Source: Thecamonas trahens ATCC 50062 (Eukaryota; Protista; Apusomonadida). Taken from it: 64,000 bases of DNA. Shown here piece after piece: positions 57,577 through 63,189 of the stretch (positions within the stretch are counted from its first letter, which is position 1; the number at the start of each line of letters is the position of its first letter). The stretch spans positions 404,709-468,708 of the forward strand of contig NW_013657674.1 of assembly GCF_000142905.1 (NCBI RefSeq). Direction: 5' to 3'. The notes beneath the pieces were generated by a model. The model had not been told where the DNA came from and ran no database searches. It saw only the letters and a list, made by a program, of their open reading frames with translations. Position numbers and translations under genes: made by a program.

Positions 57577-58770
57577 TTACTGGCGTGCCAGCCACTTGTT
57601 GTGCTTCTTGACGTGGGTCTTGAGCTGCTTGGTCAGGTTCTTGAGCTTGGACTTTTTGAGCGGCTCGCCGTCAGCGTCGGCGGTGGGCATGCCGCCATCG
57701 TCAAAGGCCGAGAACTGGCCGTCAAACTCGGGGAGGCGGAAAAAGTCGGCCGGCGGGGTGCTGTCGCGGGCATCGCGGGCAGCCTGCTCGGCGGCCCTTG
57801 CGGCGGCCTTTGCGGCGGCGTTGGCCTCACGGGCAGCGCGGGCAGCGCGGCGCTCGTCGCGCTCGGCGAGGAGAGTCTCGCGGTCGTCGAGCTTGACGAT
57901 GGCCACCCCGGTGTCGCGGTCCTCGAGGCGGACGCCGAGTTCGGGCAGGATTTCGTCGCGGAGCTCGTCGCAGAGTGCGAGGAGCTCGCCGGGTGAAGCC
58001 TTGGCGCGGGCGCCGGCCCGAACAGCGTCGCGGAACTTGGAGAGCGTGGTGAGGATTTCGACGACCACCGACGACGAGCCAGCGTCGCCGGTGCCGGCGA
58101 GCGCGCCGCTGCCAAATCCGAACCCGGTCTCCACCGTGGCGTAGAGCGGGTCGATGACGCCAAAGACGCCGAGAATGCGGGCGACAAAGCGGGCGGCCTG
58201 CATGAGGAGGTACGACTTGACGCCGGCATCGCCCACGGCAGACCGGTACACGTTGACGGCCGAAATGAGGTCGGCGAGAACGTGCATGGTTTTGGGCGTG
58301 TCGAACGAGTCCTTGAGCGCGGCGTCGACGTCGGCGGTGGCCGCCGCGATGGCGCTCTCGAGGGCAACCTCGGCGTCGCCCCACTTTTGCGAGCGCGCCG
58401 GCGTCTCCTCGCGGACAAGCGTCGACACGTTGAGGAAGAACTCACGGAGCTTCTTCTCCATGTCCTTGGCGTGCTGCATCGAGTTGTTCGAGTAGTCGAG
58501 CCCGCCCTCCCACGAGTGGAGGAGGAAGAGGAGGCGGATCTGCCGGGCCGAGTAGCTCTCGAGCGCCTCGCGGATGGTTTGGAAGTTCTTCAGCGACTTG
58601 GACATCTTGGAGCCGTGGATGTGCAGGTGGCCGGCGTGCAGAAAGTAGGAGGTCCACTGGTGGCAGCCAAAGTAGGCCTCAGACTGCGCCAGCTCGTTGT
58701 CGTGGTGCGGGAACTTGAGGTCGACGCCGCCGCCGTGAATGTCGAGGTGGTCGCCGAGAATGGCGCCGGC

Positions 58771-58803
<33 letters not shown>

Positions 58804-59802
58804 GCCGCGGCCCCACGGCGAGTCCCACGCCGGCTCGCCGGCCTTGGACGCCTTCCACAGCGCAAAGTCGGCGAGCGACCGCTTCTCCGAGCTTGAGTCT
58901 GCCGCCAGCGCGCCCTCGCCCTCCGCGAGCGCCTTTGCGTTGTCGCGCATCTCCGGCGCGAGCTTGGCATACACGTGCCCAGCGTCCATGAACGAGCCAG
59001 TCGCAAAGTAGACCGAGCCATTCGAGACGTACCCGAGCCCGCGCTCCACAATCTTGGCCGTCATCTCGATGATCTCGTCGACGTACTCGGAGACGCGCGT
59101 GAGCGCGTGCGGCGGCCGGACACCGAGCGCCTCCATGTCCTCCAGGTACTCGGTCTCGTACTTACGAGTATGCGCCGCAAAGATGTCGAGGTCGGTCACG
59201 CTGGCCCCCTTGGCGGCGTCGAGCCAGACCGCAAGCACGTCGCGGGCAGCGTCAATGGCCTCACCCGCTCCACCGTCCGCAGCAAGGCTAGCCAGCCCAG
59301 CCTCGGCCGAGCTCTTGGTAGCCGCGAGCAGCTTTGCCTTGGCCACAGACTCGGGTGTCTCCTGCTCCGCCAGCTCGGCGGCCTTGGCCTCGAACCCGTA
59401 GCCCTCGATGGCGGCGGCAATGTCGGCAGCGACGTCGGGAACAGAGCCTACCAGCGCGGCGGCCTTGTACTCGTCGAAGAGGTAGTTCTGCCGGGCGCGG
59501 AGAATGATCTTGTCGTCAACGTCGGTGATGTTCATGACCGCGTGCACGTCGTAGCCAAAGTAGTCCTCCAGAATACGGCGGATGATGTCAAACGAGAGGT
59601 ACGCGCGGGCGTGGCCAAGATGTGCCGAGTCGTACACTGTTGGCCCGCAGATGTACCAGTTGACTCGGTTGCCGTTCTTGGGCACAAACGCATCCTTGTT
59701 CTTGGTCAGCGTGTTGAGGACGTGCAGGCCCTTGTAGCCCGATCCGACCGCATCCTTATCACCCGGCGGTGCCCAATGATTCTCGTTGCTGTTATCGGCC
59801 AT
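57577..59802 (-). CDS. CARS1: Cysteinyl-tRNA synthetase (eukaryotic cytosolic type)
   Basis: Motifs WYICGPTVYDSAHLGHAR, MNITDVDDKII, DFALWK, GRPGWHIECSAM, DLKFPHHDNELAQ and KMSKSLKNF. Confidence 0.96.
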
Positions 59803-60944
59803 AAAACTGCTGCTCTCGGCCACAACGACCCCATGAGTGCATTCCACGTTCACATCCATCCGTCGGCCGACCGCATCCGTCCGCCCAACAACGCCCAGCG
59901 AGGTTGGCAACCAAGCCGTGGCCGACGATGCCCAAGCCGTTCCCCACGGTGAGTACCCACTACTCCCCGAAGTAGCTCCATTGCGCCAAGAGCCATGCCA
60001 GTACGGCAACGAGTACCATGCCTGTGCAGGAGTGAGCCACAGCAGTGGGTTGGTGGTGGTGGTGGTGGTGGTGGTGGTGGTGGCTGGCCCTGGCAAGCCT
60101 CCATTCGAACCATCCACCGAAGCCACTCGCCTGCCGAAGTGACTCACCTGCCAGGGCATGCGCATAGCAGCAGAGGAAGGGAACGGGAAGGGCAAGGGGC
60201 AAGGAAGAGGGGAGATAAAAAGGAGAAGAACCACTTGGCCCATAGCCCCAGTTAAAACCCCAGCTGCCCTGCATTGGCCATGGCTCTCCCATCGGCTGTT
60301 TGTACATACGTTGTGGTGCGAGAAGTGGGACAAGAACTGGGGAGGGTGGGGAGGGGGACAGGGGGGGGGAGGGGGAGGGGGAGGGAGGGGGAGGGGGAGT
60401 GACTCGGTCGACCACATGGCTGACCTTCATCCGATCGGGGCGAGAGGTGAGGGTGTGAGGGTGGGCTAAGAGGTGGATTGGGCATACGTGTGCGTGTGCG
60501 TGTGCGTGTGTCTGTGCGTGTGCATGTGTGATACAGATGGGGGTTAATAGAGGTGATGATGGCGATGATGGCGATGACGAGGGGGGGGGGGAGGGCATAG
60601 CCATCAGCCTCCTCGCTGGCATGGCCAGTAGCAGCGATAGCGGCGATGCCATCGATCAACAGCTGTTGATGGTGAGAGGTTGATGATGGTGATGGATGGT
60701 AATGAGGAGTCATGGGTGGTGATGGGTGATCTTGGGGTGATCCCAGGTGTCTCTTGCGGTGGGCAGTGGCTTTGGCTTGGCCCTGGATTGACTCTGGCTT
60801 GGCTCTGCCTTGCTGGCGCTGCCTTGCTTGACTCTGGTTTGCAACCACTTAACTCGTTGAGCAACTAGGTGCTCACTCCCTCTCCCTCCCCTCCTCCGGC
60901 ATCACTTGACGCACCACCACCACCACCACCACCACCAGCAGCAC

Positions 60945-63189
60945 ATGCTCCCGTCACAGAAGAGTGGACGGGTGTTCCAGGCACAGCGTGGGAGACCTCT
61001 TCTCAGCCAGCGGAACATGGTCCTGGGCATGGTCGTCCTCCTCGGCCTCTACCTGGTGAGCAACCTGTACAGCTCGGGCGGTCTCGCTGGCACGGGTCGT
61101 GGGCAGAGCGGAAGCCACCTGGACAAGGATGCCCGCATTGTCATTCTCGGTGCTGGTGTGACTGGTCTCGGTGCTGCCTACCGTCTCAATGAGCTCGGTC
61201 ACCGTGACTGGGCCGTCTATGAGATGGCCGACAAGCCCGTTGGCCTCGCTCAGTCGGTTGTCGATGACCAGGGCTTCACCTGGGACATCGGTGTCCATGT
61301 CCTCTTCTCGCACTTTGGCTACTTTGACACGCTCCTCGGTAGGTGCCCTTCTCCCCCTCCCCTGGCGTCGCATCTCCTCCTCTGATTCCTCACTCACACC
61401 GATCCACAGACGCCCATCTGCCGGTCGACGAGTGGCAATACCAATACGGGCGTCGCCGATCTACATGCGCGATCGGTTTGTGGGCTACCCGCTGCAGAAC
61501 AACGTGTGGCGGCTGCCGCCGGCCGATGCGGAAAAGTGCCTCGTCGGCTTGCTCGAGGTCCACGACGATGCCGTGGCTGGTGTGACCAAGCCCAAGCCGC
61601 ACACCTTTGCCGAGTGGGTCGATCAGTCGTTTGGCTCGGGCATCGCCGAGGTCTTCATGACTCCGTACAACTTCAAGGTATGGGCCCATCCCACCACCGA
61701 GCTCAACCCGACGTGGGTGGGCGAGCGGGTGGCAACCATCGACTTTAAGCGCATTCTCTCCAACATGGTCAACGAGTTTGAGGACGTCCACTGGGGGCCC
61801 AACGCCCGGTTCCGCTACCCATCGCGTGGAGCAGGCAAGATCTGGGAGAATGTCTACCGCGGCCTCCCGCGGTCGCGGTTTAACTTTGAGATGGAGGCTC
61901 TCGAGATCAACGTCGACGACCCGAACAACAAGTACGTGGCCTTTGCCGATGGGACCCGCGTCCCGTTCGACGCACTCATCTCGACCATTCCCATGGACAA
62001 GCTGCTCACTCGCATTGCCAACCGGCCGGACCTCGCCGCGTGGGGCTCAGAAAAAGGCGCGTTCAAGCGGCAGACCGTCAACCTGGTCGGGGTCGGGGTC
62101 GAAGGCATCACGCCCGCAGCGTGGAACTCCTCGCACTGGATCTACTTTCCCGAGGAGATCTACCCGTTCTACCGCATCACGCTCCTCACCAACTTTTCGC
62201 CGTACATGGTGCCCAAGCCTGGCGAGCAGTACTCGGTCCTGGTAGAGGTCTCCGAGTCCAAGTACCGCAAGGTCGATCAGGCGACGCTCGTCGACGACGT
62301 CATCGCCGGCCTCAAGCACGCCGGCGTCATTCCGGACGGCGCGCCGATTGTCTCGCGCTGGCAGGAGCGGTTTGACTATGGCTACCCGGTGCCGTACGTC
62401 GAGCTCACCGAGCACGTTCTCCGTGCCAACGACGAGCTGCTCCAGCTCGGCATCTGGTCGCGCGGTCGCTTCGGCAACTGGCGGTATGTGACGGGCAACC
62501 AGGACCACGTGTGCATGCAGGGTGTGCAGGCCGTGGACAACATCCTGTTTGGCGACTACGAGGAGATTGTGTACGAGCCCAACGTGGTCAACGGCAAGAA
62601 AGGCCAGCGCAAGATTCTCCCGCCTGAGATCAAGGACCATTGGGATGTAGTCATCCCCGGCTGCATCCCCGACCTCGCCGCTTGGCTCGCGCCGCTCCTC
62701 GACGACCTCGCCGCCGCTGACATCGTCCCGCGGGTCTTTGTCTACTCGTCCTGCAAGTCGGATGGTGGCCTGCCGGACACGCTCACCTCCAAGTACGACA
62801 TCCGGGTGGCGTCTGCGCCCACGTCGTCGGCAAACACCGCCAACCTCGTCACCTACGCCTCGCATGTCCTCGCTAACTACGATGATCTCAACCCGATCAC
62901 CTTTTTCCTGCCCGGCGCTGCAACTATGGGCGCCTCACTCACCCATCCCTCGCCGCACGACTTTGACATCACCTCGTCGTACGAGAACCGCGGCCACTTT
63001 ATGTACCAGAAGGCTTCTGGCGTCACCGATCCGCTCTTCTGCACCTTCTTTGAGGCCCTCTACGCCTTTGATGGCCTCGACTGCCCTACCGCCTTTGAGT
63101 CGGCAGCCGCCTTCCACATCTCGCGCGGCACCCTCCTCCACCTCTTGCCTCAGGACTACCAGGCTTTGCTCATGCTCAAGCATGCGTAG
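60945..63189 (+). CDS. Eukaryotic-type UDP-galactopyranose mutase with N-terminal signal anchor and C-terminal DUF3431-like domain; join(60945..61338,61410..63189) with an apparent 1-nt deletion near 61443
   Basis: Motifs GAGVTGLGAA, WD.G.HV.FSH, YPLQNN, PYNFKVWA, GERVA, WGPNA.FR.P, W.YFPE..PFYR, GYP and SRGRFG.W.Y..GNQDH..MQG. Hydrophobic segment MVLGMVVLLGLYLV follows a basic N-terminus. Confidence 0.82.

Follow-up and report, generated by a model that had tools for sequence, protein, structure and literature searches.

A UDP-galactopyranose mutase with a predicted signal anchor and a GT-A-like terminal domain in Thecamonas trahens, and its place in a broad protist clade

The characterised eukaryotic UDP-galactopyranose mutases (UGMs) are described as cytosolic enzymes, and a dedicated transporter of UDP-galactofuranose (UDP-Galf) feeds the galactofuranosylating transferases of the Golgi (PMC7278926, PMC4630932). 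The equilibrium of the reaction lies 11:1 in favour of the pyranose form (PMC7278926). We have analyzed a gene of the apusomonad Thecamonas trahens ATCC 50062 whose predicted product differs from these enzymes, located on the plus strand at positions 60945–63189 of a window of 64,000 nucleotides (contig NW_013657674.1, positions 404,709 to 468,708; coordinates given below are those of the window). In a word-index search the product corresponded to P0001, a protein of 692 residues named UDP-galactopyranose mutase of Thecamonas trahens ATCC 50062 by NCBI; the identity of the gene as a UGM is thus already annotated and hence not new, and literature searches found no paper on the architecture of this gene or on an anchored or fused UGM. 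The first-pass annotation of the window had described a membrane-anchored mutase fused to an additional C-terminal domain. Our findings favour, with a probability of roughly 0.55, a secretory-pathway UGM that would be anchored and lumenal, and whose attached domain of glycosyltransferase A (GT-A) type would likely transfer galactofuranose. The architecture is a variant of a known enzyme, common to a broad protist clade.

The catalytic region leaves little doubt about the family. The two exons were searched separately, the only joined model used being the NCBI protein P0001. Exon 1 (60945–61338) encodes a basic tail, a hydrophobic segment, a stem, the motif that binds flavin adenine dinucleotide (FAD) and the histidine loop, and its residues 64–130 align to residues 11–77 of the Trypanosoma cruzi UGM (E 3.3e-23). 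The FAD-binding beta-alpha-beta motif lies at 61134–61187, with its GxGxxG signature (GAGVTG) at 61149–61166, and is recognised by the Pfam family NAD_binding_8 (E 1.4e-09). The histidine loop (61290–61298) reads GVH in place of GGH when aligned to the T. cruzi and Aspergillus fumigatus UGMs; the His of the solved enzymes is retained and their second Gly is replaced by Val, a change that is fixed throughout the fused clade described below and is therefore compatible with a conserved function. Exon 2 matches residues 91–472 of the T. cruzi UGM from 61447 onwards (E 4.5e-90, structure 4dsg) as well as the A. fumigatus UGM (about 3e-87), and the UGM body so delimited (61447–62613), comprising the substrate-binding and FAD-contacting domains, conserves the substrate and flavin motifs FRYP, PYNFKVWA, FYR, RGRFGxWRY and NQDH. 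The near-complete set of eukaryotic UGM motifs with an altered histidine loop, noticed in the first-pass annotation, was accordingly recovered at the same places by alignment to the solved enzymes.

Two additions distinguish this protein from a canonical mutase. At the N-terminus, residues 1–24 (60945–61016) form a tail with five Lys or Arg and neither Asp nor Glu, predicted to be cytosolic, and they are followed by a single hydrophobic segment (residues 25–43, 61017–61073; Kyte-Doolittle mean of 1.84 over 19 residues and 2.45 over 15 residues), predicted to act as a signal anchor or else as a signal-peptide h-region. A Gly/Ser-rich stem (61074–61133) leads from there to the catalytic domain. 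Solved cytosolic UGMs align only from residue 57–64, so that the first 60 or so residues of the Thecamonas protein have no counterpart in them. The basic N-terminus, the one hydrophobic segment and the short stem had all been proposed before and were found as described. At the C-terminus, the frame of exon 2 continues for 183 residues past the UGM, from 62638 to a TAG stop codon at 63187–63189 that ends the open frame, in agreement with the extension of about 180 residues proposed earlier. A linker (62614–62640; per-residue model confidence, pLDDT, below 50 at residues 384–394 of the exon-2 model) joins the UGM to a DUF3431-like domain of predicted GT-A fold (62641–63186), with four Cys codons at 62662, 62752, 63040 and 63082, a His codon at 62863 and a CP pair. 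That this domain could be a separate gene or transcript was considered and discarded, as it shares one open reading frame (ORF) with the mutase in this genome and in the transcripts of a relative, where the spliced sequences P0002 and P0126 encode anchor, UGM and domain within a single ORF.

The same additions recur together in other protists. A full-length search retrieved P0002 (713 residues, from a Tara metatranscriptome), which shares the exact anchor-UGM-domain layout, as well as about 18 longer proteins in which an N-terminal hydrophobic segment is followed by a GalE-like epimerase, the UGM and the C-terminal domain. The sources of the latter, taken from cluster members and from source names, include Chrysotila carterae, Emiliania huxleyi, Euglena gracilis, E. 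longa and Entosiphon sulcatum, and a cercozoan protein (Mataza, P0004) has the anchor and the UGM and lacks the C-terminal domain. Among the 123 retrieved proteins whose histidine loop was surveyed, GVH occurs in 22 and GGH in 97, a long C-terminal tail being present in 20 of the 22 with GVH. A hydrophobic N-terminal segment is found in every complete clade member and in none of 94 unfused UGMs. When the UGM cores were placed in a maximum-likelihood tree, the 21 fused proteins grouped with the Mataza protein and one fragment in a clade of full support (Shimodaira-Hasegawa-like approximate likelihood ratio test, SH-aLRT, of 100). Anchor, GVH loop and C-terminal domain thus co-occur in a single protist UGM clade, most members of which additionally carry the fused GalE-like epimerase. 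The order of the modules is not always the same, since P0114 (1131 residues, JGI metagenome) reads anchor-UGM-domain-epimerase in place of the usual anchor-epimerase-UGM-domain, and the joining of the three modules in two orders is evidence that they are functionally connected on the route from UDP-glucose (UDP-Glc) through UDP-galactopyranose (UDP-Galp) to UDP-Galf.

The nature of the C-terminal domain was approached by sequence and by structure. The domain has few close neighbours: searched alone by word index against partners of 100–320 residues it gave no match, and within long proteins it found only P0001 itself; an exhaustive profile search over 1.84 billion representatives yielded two close relatives, P0121 and P0003, while P0122 and P0123, from the same search, were discarded as repeat or low-complexity false matches. 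PHROGs holds no family for it. Comparison of the apusomonad-type with the haptophyte/euglenid-type domain profiles by hhalign gave a probability of 94.7% (E 6e-8, 165 columns), so the two types of terminal domain are homologous. PF11913 (DUF3431) is matched at E <= 1 by 12 of 21 fused proteins, and in the nine or so inspected, positions ~143–212 of the family map onto the last ~65 residues (16–25 bits, E 2e-5 to 8e-3). In an Atlas language-model search with residues 505–692 of P0001, every one of the 30 named matches was a DUF3431 cluster (score 0.94, 192–196 of 256 features); DUF3431 clusters labelled viral were also listed. On these profile and embedding comparisons, we regard the domain as a remote relative of DUF3431 and not as a member of the Pfam family. 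The likeness to DUF3431 claimed in the first-pass annotation thus stands as remote homology, and a direct match of this sequence to PF11913 was not found at E <= 1.

An AlphaFold2 model of the domain, built with a 24-sequence alignment, shows alternating beta and alpha elements (pLDDT 79.7, predicted template modelling score, pTM, 0.80). Foldseek matched it to GT-A glycosyltransferases, BoGT6a among them, and to sugar nucleotidyltransferases. In an exhaustive structural comparison, which reached Z 10.5, the leading matches were ArnC (10.5), GtrB (10.1), dolichyl-phosphate mannose synthase (DPMS, 10.0) and mannosylglycerate synthase (9.8), and the galactofuranosyltransferases A. fumigatus GfsA (AfGfsA) and GlfT2 scored 8.4 and 7.3, respectively. 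All 50 of the 50 structural entries among the matches listed have a GT-A or nucleotidyltransferase fold, and their alignments span nearly the entire domain. The model therefore assigns the C-terminal domain a GT-A fold. DUF3431 had been referred to previously as a putative glycosyltransferase-like family; that label was the earlier reader's own gloss, and what now stands of it is the fold predicted here. The best viral structural match was the BFVD entry A0A481Z5S5 of Pithovirus LCPAC202 (769 residues, ‘flavin containing amine oxidoreductase’, E 2e-6), which may represent the same fusion of UGM and domain.

The comparisons above establish the architecture, the homologies, the fold, the conservation and the clade; what we infer from them is the topology of the protein, its activities and their coupling. 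The basic cytosolic tail and the one signal-anchor helix would place the FAD-dependent mutase in the lumen of the endoplasmic reticulum (ER) or Golgi, where it would turn UDP-Galp, brought in through an ordinary UDP-Gal transporter, into UDP-Galf. In the lineages with a fused GalE-like 4-epimerase, UDP-Galp would be made in place, extending the line back to UDP-glucose. The attached GT-A domain would bind the scarce and thermodynamically disfavoured UDP-Galf and use it up at once, most likely by passing the galactofuranose on to a lumenal acceptor, which would pull the equilibrium. An equilibrium of 11:1 against the furanose (PMC7278926) provides a rationale for such a coupling of mutase and transferase. 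The genome of Thecamonas contains no unfused UGM. It has two GalE-like genes, on C19 and C21, and in the ORF on C19 a Met stands immediately before the Rossmann motif.

Whether the copy in the window encodes an intact enzyme depends on the junction of its two exons. The first-pass annotation had placed the features of the ORF correctly, and had described neither the intron nor a break in the frame. The intron (GTAGGT...CACAG, phase 1) spans 61339–61409, and its position is conserved with that of a marine relative of 61% identity, whose spliced sequences P0126 and P0002 show the same junction and read ...FDSLL/DSVMPKDEWSYHTRSSPIYM (LL/D). In P0127 (L015, an environmental ENA contig of 2864 bp) the intron is retained at the exact point of the Thecamonas intron, so that its position is conserved between two lineages. 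Applied to the window copy (C6), this junction leads to a frame that closes at a stop at 61585. The cause is a 1-nt deletion at 61443/61444, seen in pairwise DNA alignment to the second full copy in the genome (the paralog C33), which falls within the conserved W-x-Y-H-x-R segment, at a spot where C6 and C33 also differ by a few clustered substitutions. The paralog reads DAHLPVDEWQYHTRSSPIYM across the junction in a single frame, and paralog and orthologs alike read EW.YHTRSSPIYM in one frame; an uninterrupted frame over the conserved segment after the histidine loop is thus present in C33 and absent from C6 when the conserved junction is used, which weighs against our reading of the window copy. 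Two other junctions would open the frame. A tandem donor GT at 61343–61344 adds 4 nt (+4 −1 = +3) and restores the frame of C6, and in doing so swaps about 13 conserved residues for unrelated ones. The acceptor AG at 61431–61432 in the NCBI model opens the frame and removes the conserved segment, P0001 reading LL/VAIPIRASP; we rejected it as the true junction, as it deletes a segment kept in all relatives and conflicts with the junction of P0126 and P0127.

It is conceivable, although on balance unlikely, that the window copy has become a pseudogene or is a duplicate that no longer works, that C33 is the functional gene, and that the open NCBI model is an annotation workaround. The deletion within a segment conserved in all relatives, the support for the LL/D junction from spliced and unspliced environmental sequences, and the loss of that segment under the NCBI acceptor all speak for such a decay. 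The frame is nonetheless restored exactly by the tandem donor 4 nt downstream, and the UGM body appears constrained relative to C33, with a ratio of non-synonymous to synonymous substitution rates (dN/dS) of 0.066, though gene conversion could account for this too. Moreover, C33 has a lesion of its own: the ATG that aligns with the start of C6 lies next to a run of six C and is out of frame, one extra C would restore the frame, and C33 has no alternative in-frame ATG 5' of the hydrophobic segment. That each of two copies under apparent constraint should have its own, different single lesion points to errors in the assembly no less than to decay. The C6 copy may hence depend on the tandem donor for its splicing, or else be defective, and the junction of C33 is intact.

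The two full copies in the 28.7-Mb genome (C33 at G000:C33:181288-183520; L004 5288-7503; L003) share 96% nucleotide identity, unevenly distributed. Between their UGM bodies the synonymous rate dS is 0.034, with 9 synonymous and 2 non-synonymous changes, and between their C-terminal domains dS is 0.34 with a dN/dS of 0.20; the tenfold lower dS in the UGM body indicates gene conversion confined to the mutase portion. The C-terminal domain is under purifying selection. A third, partial copy consists of a 683-bp 3' fragment (G000:C25:25978-26664; L002 1486-2163, minus strand) that holds the last ~50 UGM residues and the entire C-terminal domain in an open frame of 235 residues, with neither anchor nor mutase. 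Its dN/dS is 0.22–0.27 relative to both full copies, and it represents either a stand-alone domain gene or else a recent relic. An ORF of 427 residues (L002 84-1367, plus strand) runs convergently to this fragment and has only a weak DUF3405 match below the cut-off (E 8e-4).

Several observations weigh against a transferase attached to the mutase. A direct Pfam scan of the C-terminal domain of the window found no family at E <= 1, and none of the relatives reaches the gathering cut-off of PF11913, which is 25 bits, the best scoring 24.9 bits. The DxD motif expected after beta-4 is not present, the sequence there being ITFFLPG, and a DFD 15 residues beyond it is not conserved in the family. In the other members the sole conserved acidic residue is the Glu of the YExC motif, a position that Ser occupies in Thecamonas, and a domain of about 180 residues is short for a GT-A catalytic domain. 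A model of the two domains together had a pTM of 0.64 and a disordered linker (pLDDT below 50), so that it predicts no fixed interface between mutase and transferase and is uninformative on channelling. As DxD is lacking at its usual site, a transferase role would need to be metal-independent or atypical. A search of the whole genome with PF11913 gave no match either; the control genomes were silent too, and this result is thus uninformative.

These observations would fit an explanation in which the architecture is real and the C-terminal domain is a non-catalytic GT-A-like module, serving in the binding of nucleotide sugar or UDP, in oligomerisation, in retention or in regulation of the mutase. 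The conserved positions of the family, four Cys, one His, the CP pair and aromatic residues, include hardly any acidic residue; the fold matches nucleotidyltransferases as well, and our literature searches for DUF3431/PF11913 found no assigned function. However, in Obazoa, Haptista and Discoba alike the domain has remained joined to UGM, with two arrangements of the modules, and a giant virus may have the same linkage; the dN/dS of the domain denotes constraint. Metal-independent GT-A enzymes that lack DxD do exist, and BoGT6a is among the structural matches. We consequently consider a non-catalytic module rather doubtful, and a transferase role of the domain, as modelled, plausible.

With regard to topology, the placement of the catalytic domains in the lumen is argued from a charge bias of the positive-inside type, from the conservation of the anchor and from four invariant Cys. 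The segments of the Thecamonas protein and of its relatives follow the pattern of a type II signal anchor, namely a short positive tail, one hydrophobic helix and no second membrane segment, and the distribution of charges around the helix is consistent with a type II orientation. The four invariant Cys of the terminal domain are in keeping with a lumenal domain bearing disulfide bonds. The hydrophobic segment does belong to the protein, as had been assumed before. The start codon at 60945 is the first in-frame ATG downstream of a stop at 60858–60860, similarity to C33 begins at about the basic tail, and the in-frame Met codons of exon 1 encode residues 1, 25, 29 and 94. Since Met94 lies past GxGxxG, every product with the flavin site includes the hydrophobic segment; a start downstream of that segment was thus rejected, because the FAD motif would be deleted.

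A tethered enzyme could also face the cytosol, or be targeted elsewhere, for instance to mitochondria, and make UDP-Galf outside the lumen. The topology is predicted from charge bias alone, and the Arg/Ser-rich, acid-free tail also looks like a presequence for mitochondria placed ahead of a stop-transfer segment. UGM requires reduced flavin, so a lumenal enzyme raises the question of its reductant, a further point against our reading which a cytosolic face would settle. On the other hand, the orthologs keep the hydrophobic segment and not the presequence-like tail, which is acidic in Chrysotila (P0017); in P0090, P0087 and P0114 the segment stands at the extreme N-terminus. Five positive charges precede the helix in Thecamonas, and the Cys of the terminal domain are invariant. 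Taken together, we deem an orientation or location other than lumenal improbable. Least probable of all is a mutase acting on another UDP-sugar such as UDP-arabinopyranose or UDP-GalNAc, with the epimerase of the relatives being of the UDP-xylose 4-epimerase type, since the substrate-contacting motifs of the solved UDP-Galp mutases are conserved and there is no positive evidence for a different substrate, even if the GVH change is clade-specific, substrates other than UDP-Galp are used by some bacterial homologs of UGM and plants have Golgi type II UDP-xylose 4-epimerases.

Just 5' of the start codon, a CAC/CAG repeat (60906–60944) corresponds to an in-frame run of eight His; it probably belongs to the 5' untranslated region, because there is no ATG upstream of it. 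The neighbouring gene, divergent from the UGM gene, encodes a cysteinyl-tRNA synthetase in one long ORF (57577–60417, minus strand), the N-terminal extension of which is of low complexity with runs of Pro and Thr.

The fused relatives in euglenids and haptophyte algae suggest that in these organisms the sugar is made and used inside the secretory pathway and not in the cytosol. An anchored mutase with a GT-A domain, often with a 4-epimerase as well, would be a second solution to galactofuranose supply, besides the cytosolic mutase with its transporter. The association would also be the first functional lead for DUF3431, and it points to galactofuranose glycans in Emiliania and Chrysotila, which are ecologically important algae, as well as in euglenids and apusomonads, raising the biochemical question of what maintains the flavin in its reduced state within the secretory lumen. 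A wider proposal, which we put forward only tentatively and hold to be possible rather than probable, is that this protist clade, perhaps along with some giant viruses, would possess a lumenal epimerase-mutase-transferase assembly line that dispenses with a UDP-Galf transporter, and that the DUF3431 superfamily would consist of galactofuranosyltransferases devoid of DxD.

Comparison with other systems delimits what is particular to the Thecamonas protein. The joining of a UGM to a glycosyltransferase domain is also seen in P0008 (810 residues, on a 239-kb contig), which differs in its GGH loop, in GT2 domains that Pfam recognises and in its position outside the clade. With GT-A enzymes (ArnC, GtrB and DPMS of GT2, and the GT31-type AfGfsA) the terminal domain has a Rossmann-like core in common, at Z 10.5 to 8.4 over about 150–158 residues; identity is 5–13%, and the Thecamonas domain is shorter, lacks DxD after beta-4 and has four conserved Cys. 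The motifs H/Y-x4-Y-x2-L...F, C...CP and F-x-[VI]-S-R are collinear with those of DUF3431, whose members are stand-alone proteins of 200–250 residues in contrast to the fused terminal domain described here. In overall design the protein recalls the type II nucleotide-sugar interconversion enzymes of the plant Golgi (UXS, GAE and MUR4/UXE1), with a single N-terminal anchor and a lumenal domain adjoining transferases; these come from families without relation to UGM, and a pyranose-furanose mutase is not among them, the UDP-arabinose mutase of plants (RGP) being cytosolic. Its nearest kin are the triple fusions of haptophytes and euglenids, unannotated in databases or listed as ‘NAD(P)-binding domain-containing protein’, which are alike in belonging to the same UGM clade and in the GVH loop, the N-terminal hydrophobic segment and the homologous terminal domain, and which differ by an extra GalE-like domain, a terminal domain about 70 residues longer and a retained YExC Glu. 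Finally, the A. fumigatus UgmA/Glf and the T. cruzi and Leishmania GLF enzymes (PDB 3ute, 4dsg) are collinear with the Thecamonas mutase over the whole catalytic region, with the motifs kept, whereas the latter is longer by about 60 N-terminal residues, which include a predicted signal anchor, has GVH in place of GGH and a GT-A-like C-terminal domain of 183 residues, and is predicted to be lumenal, unlike the characterised enzymes, which the literature describes as cytosolic and as dependent on a transporter of UDP-Galf (PMC7278926, PMC4630932).

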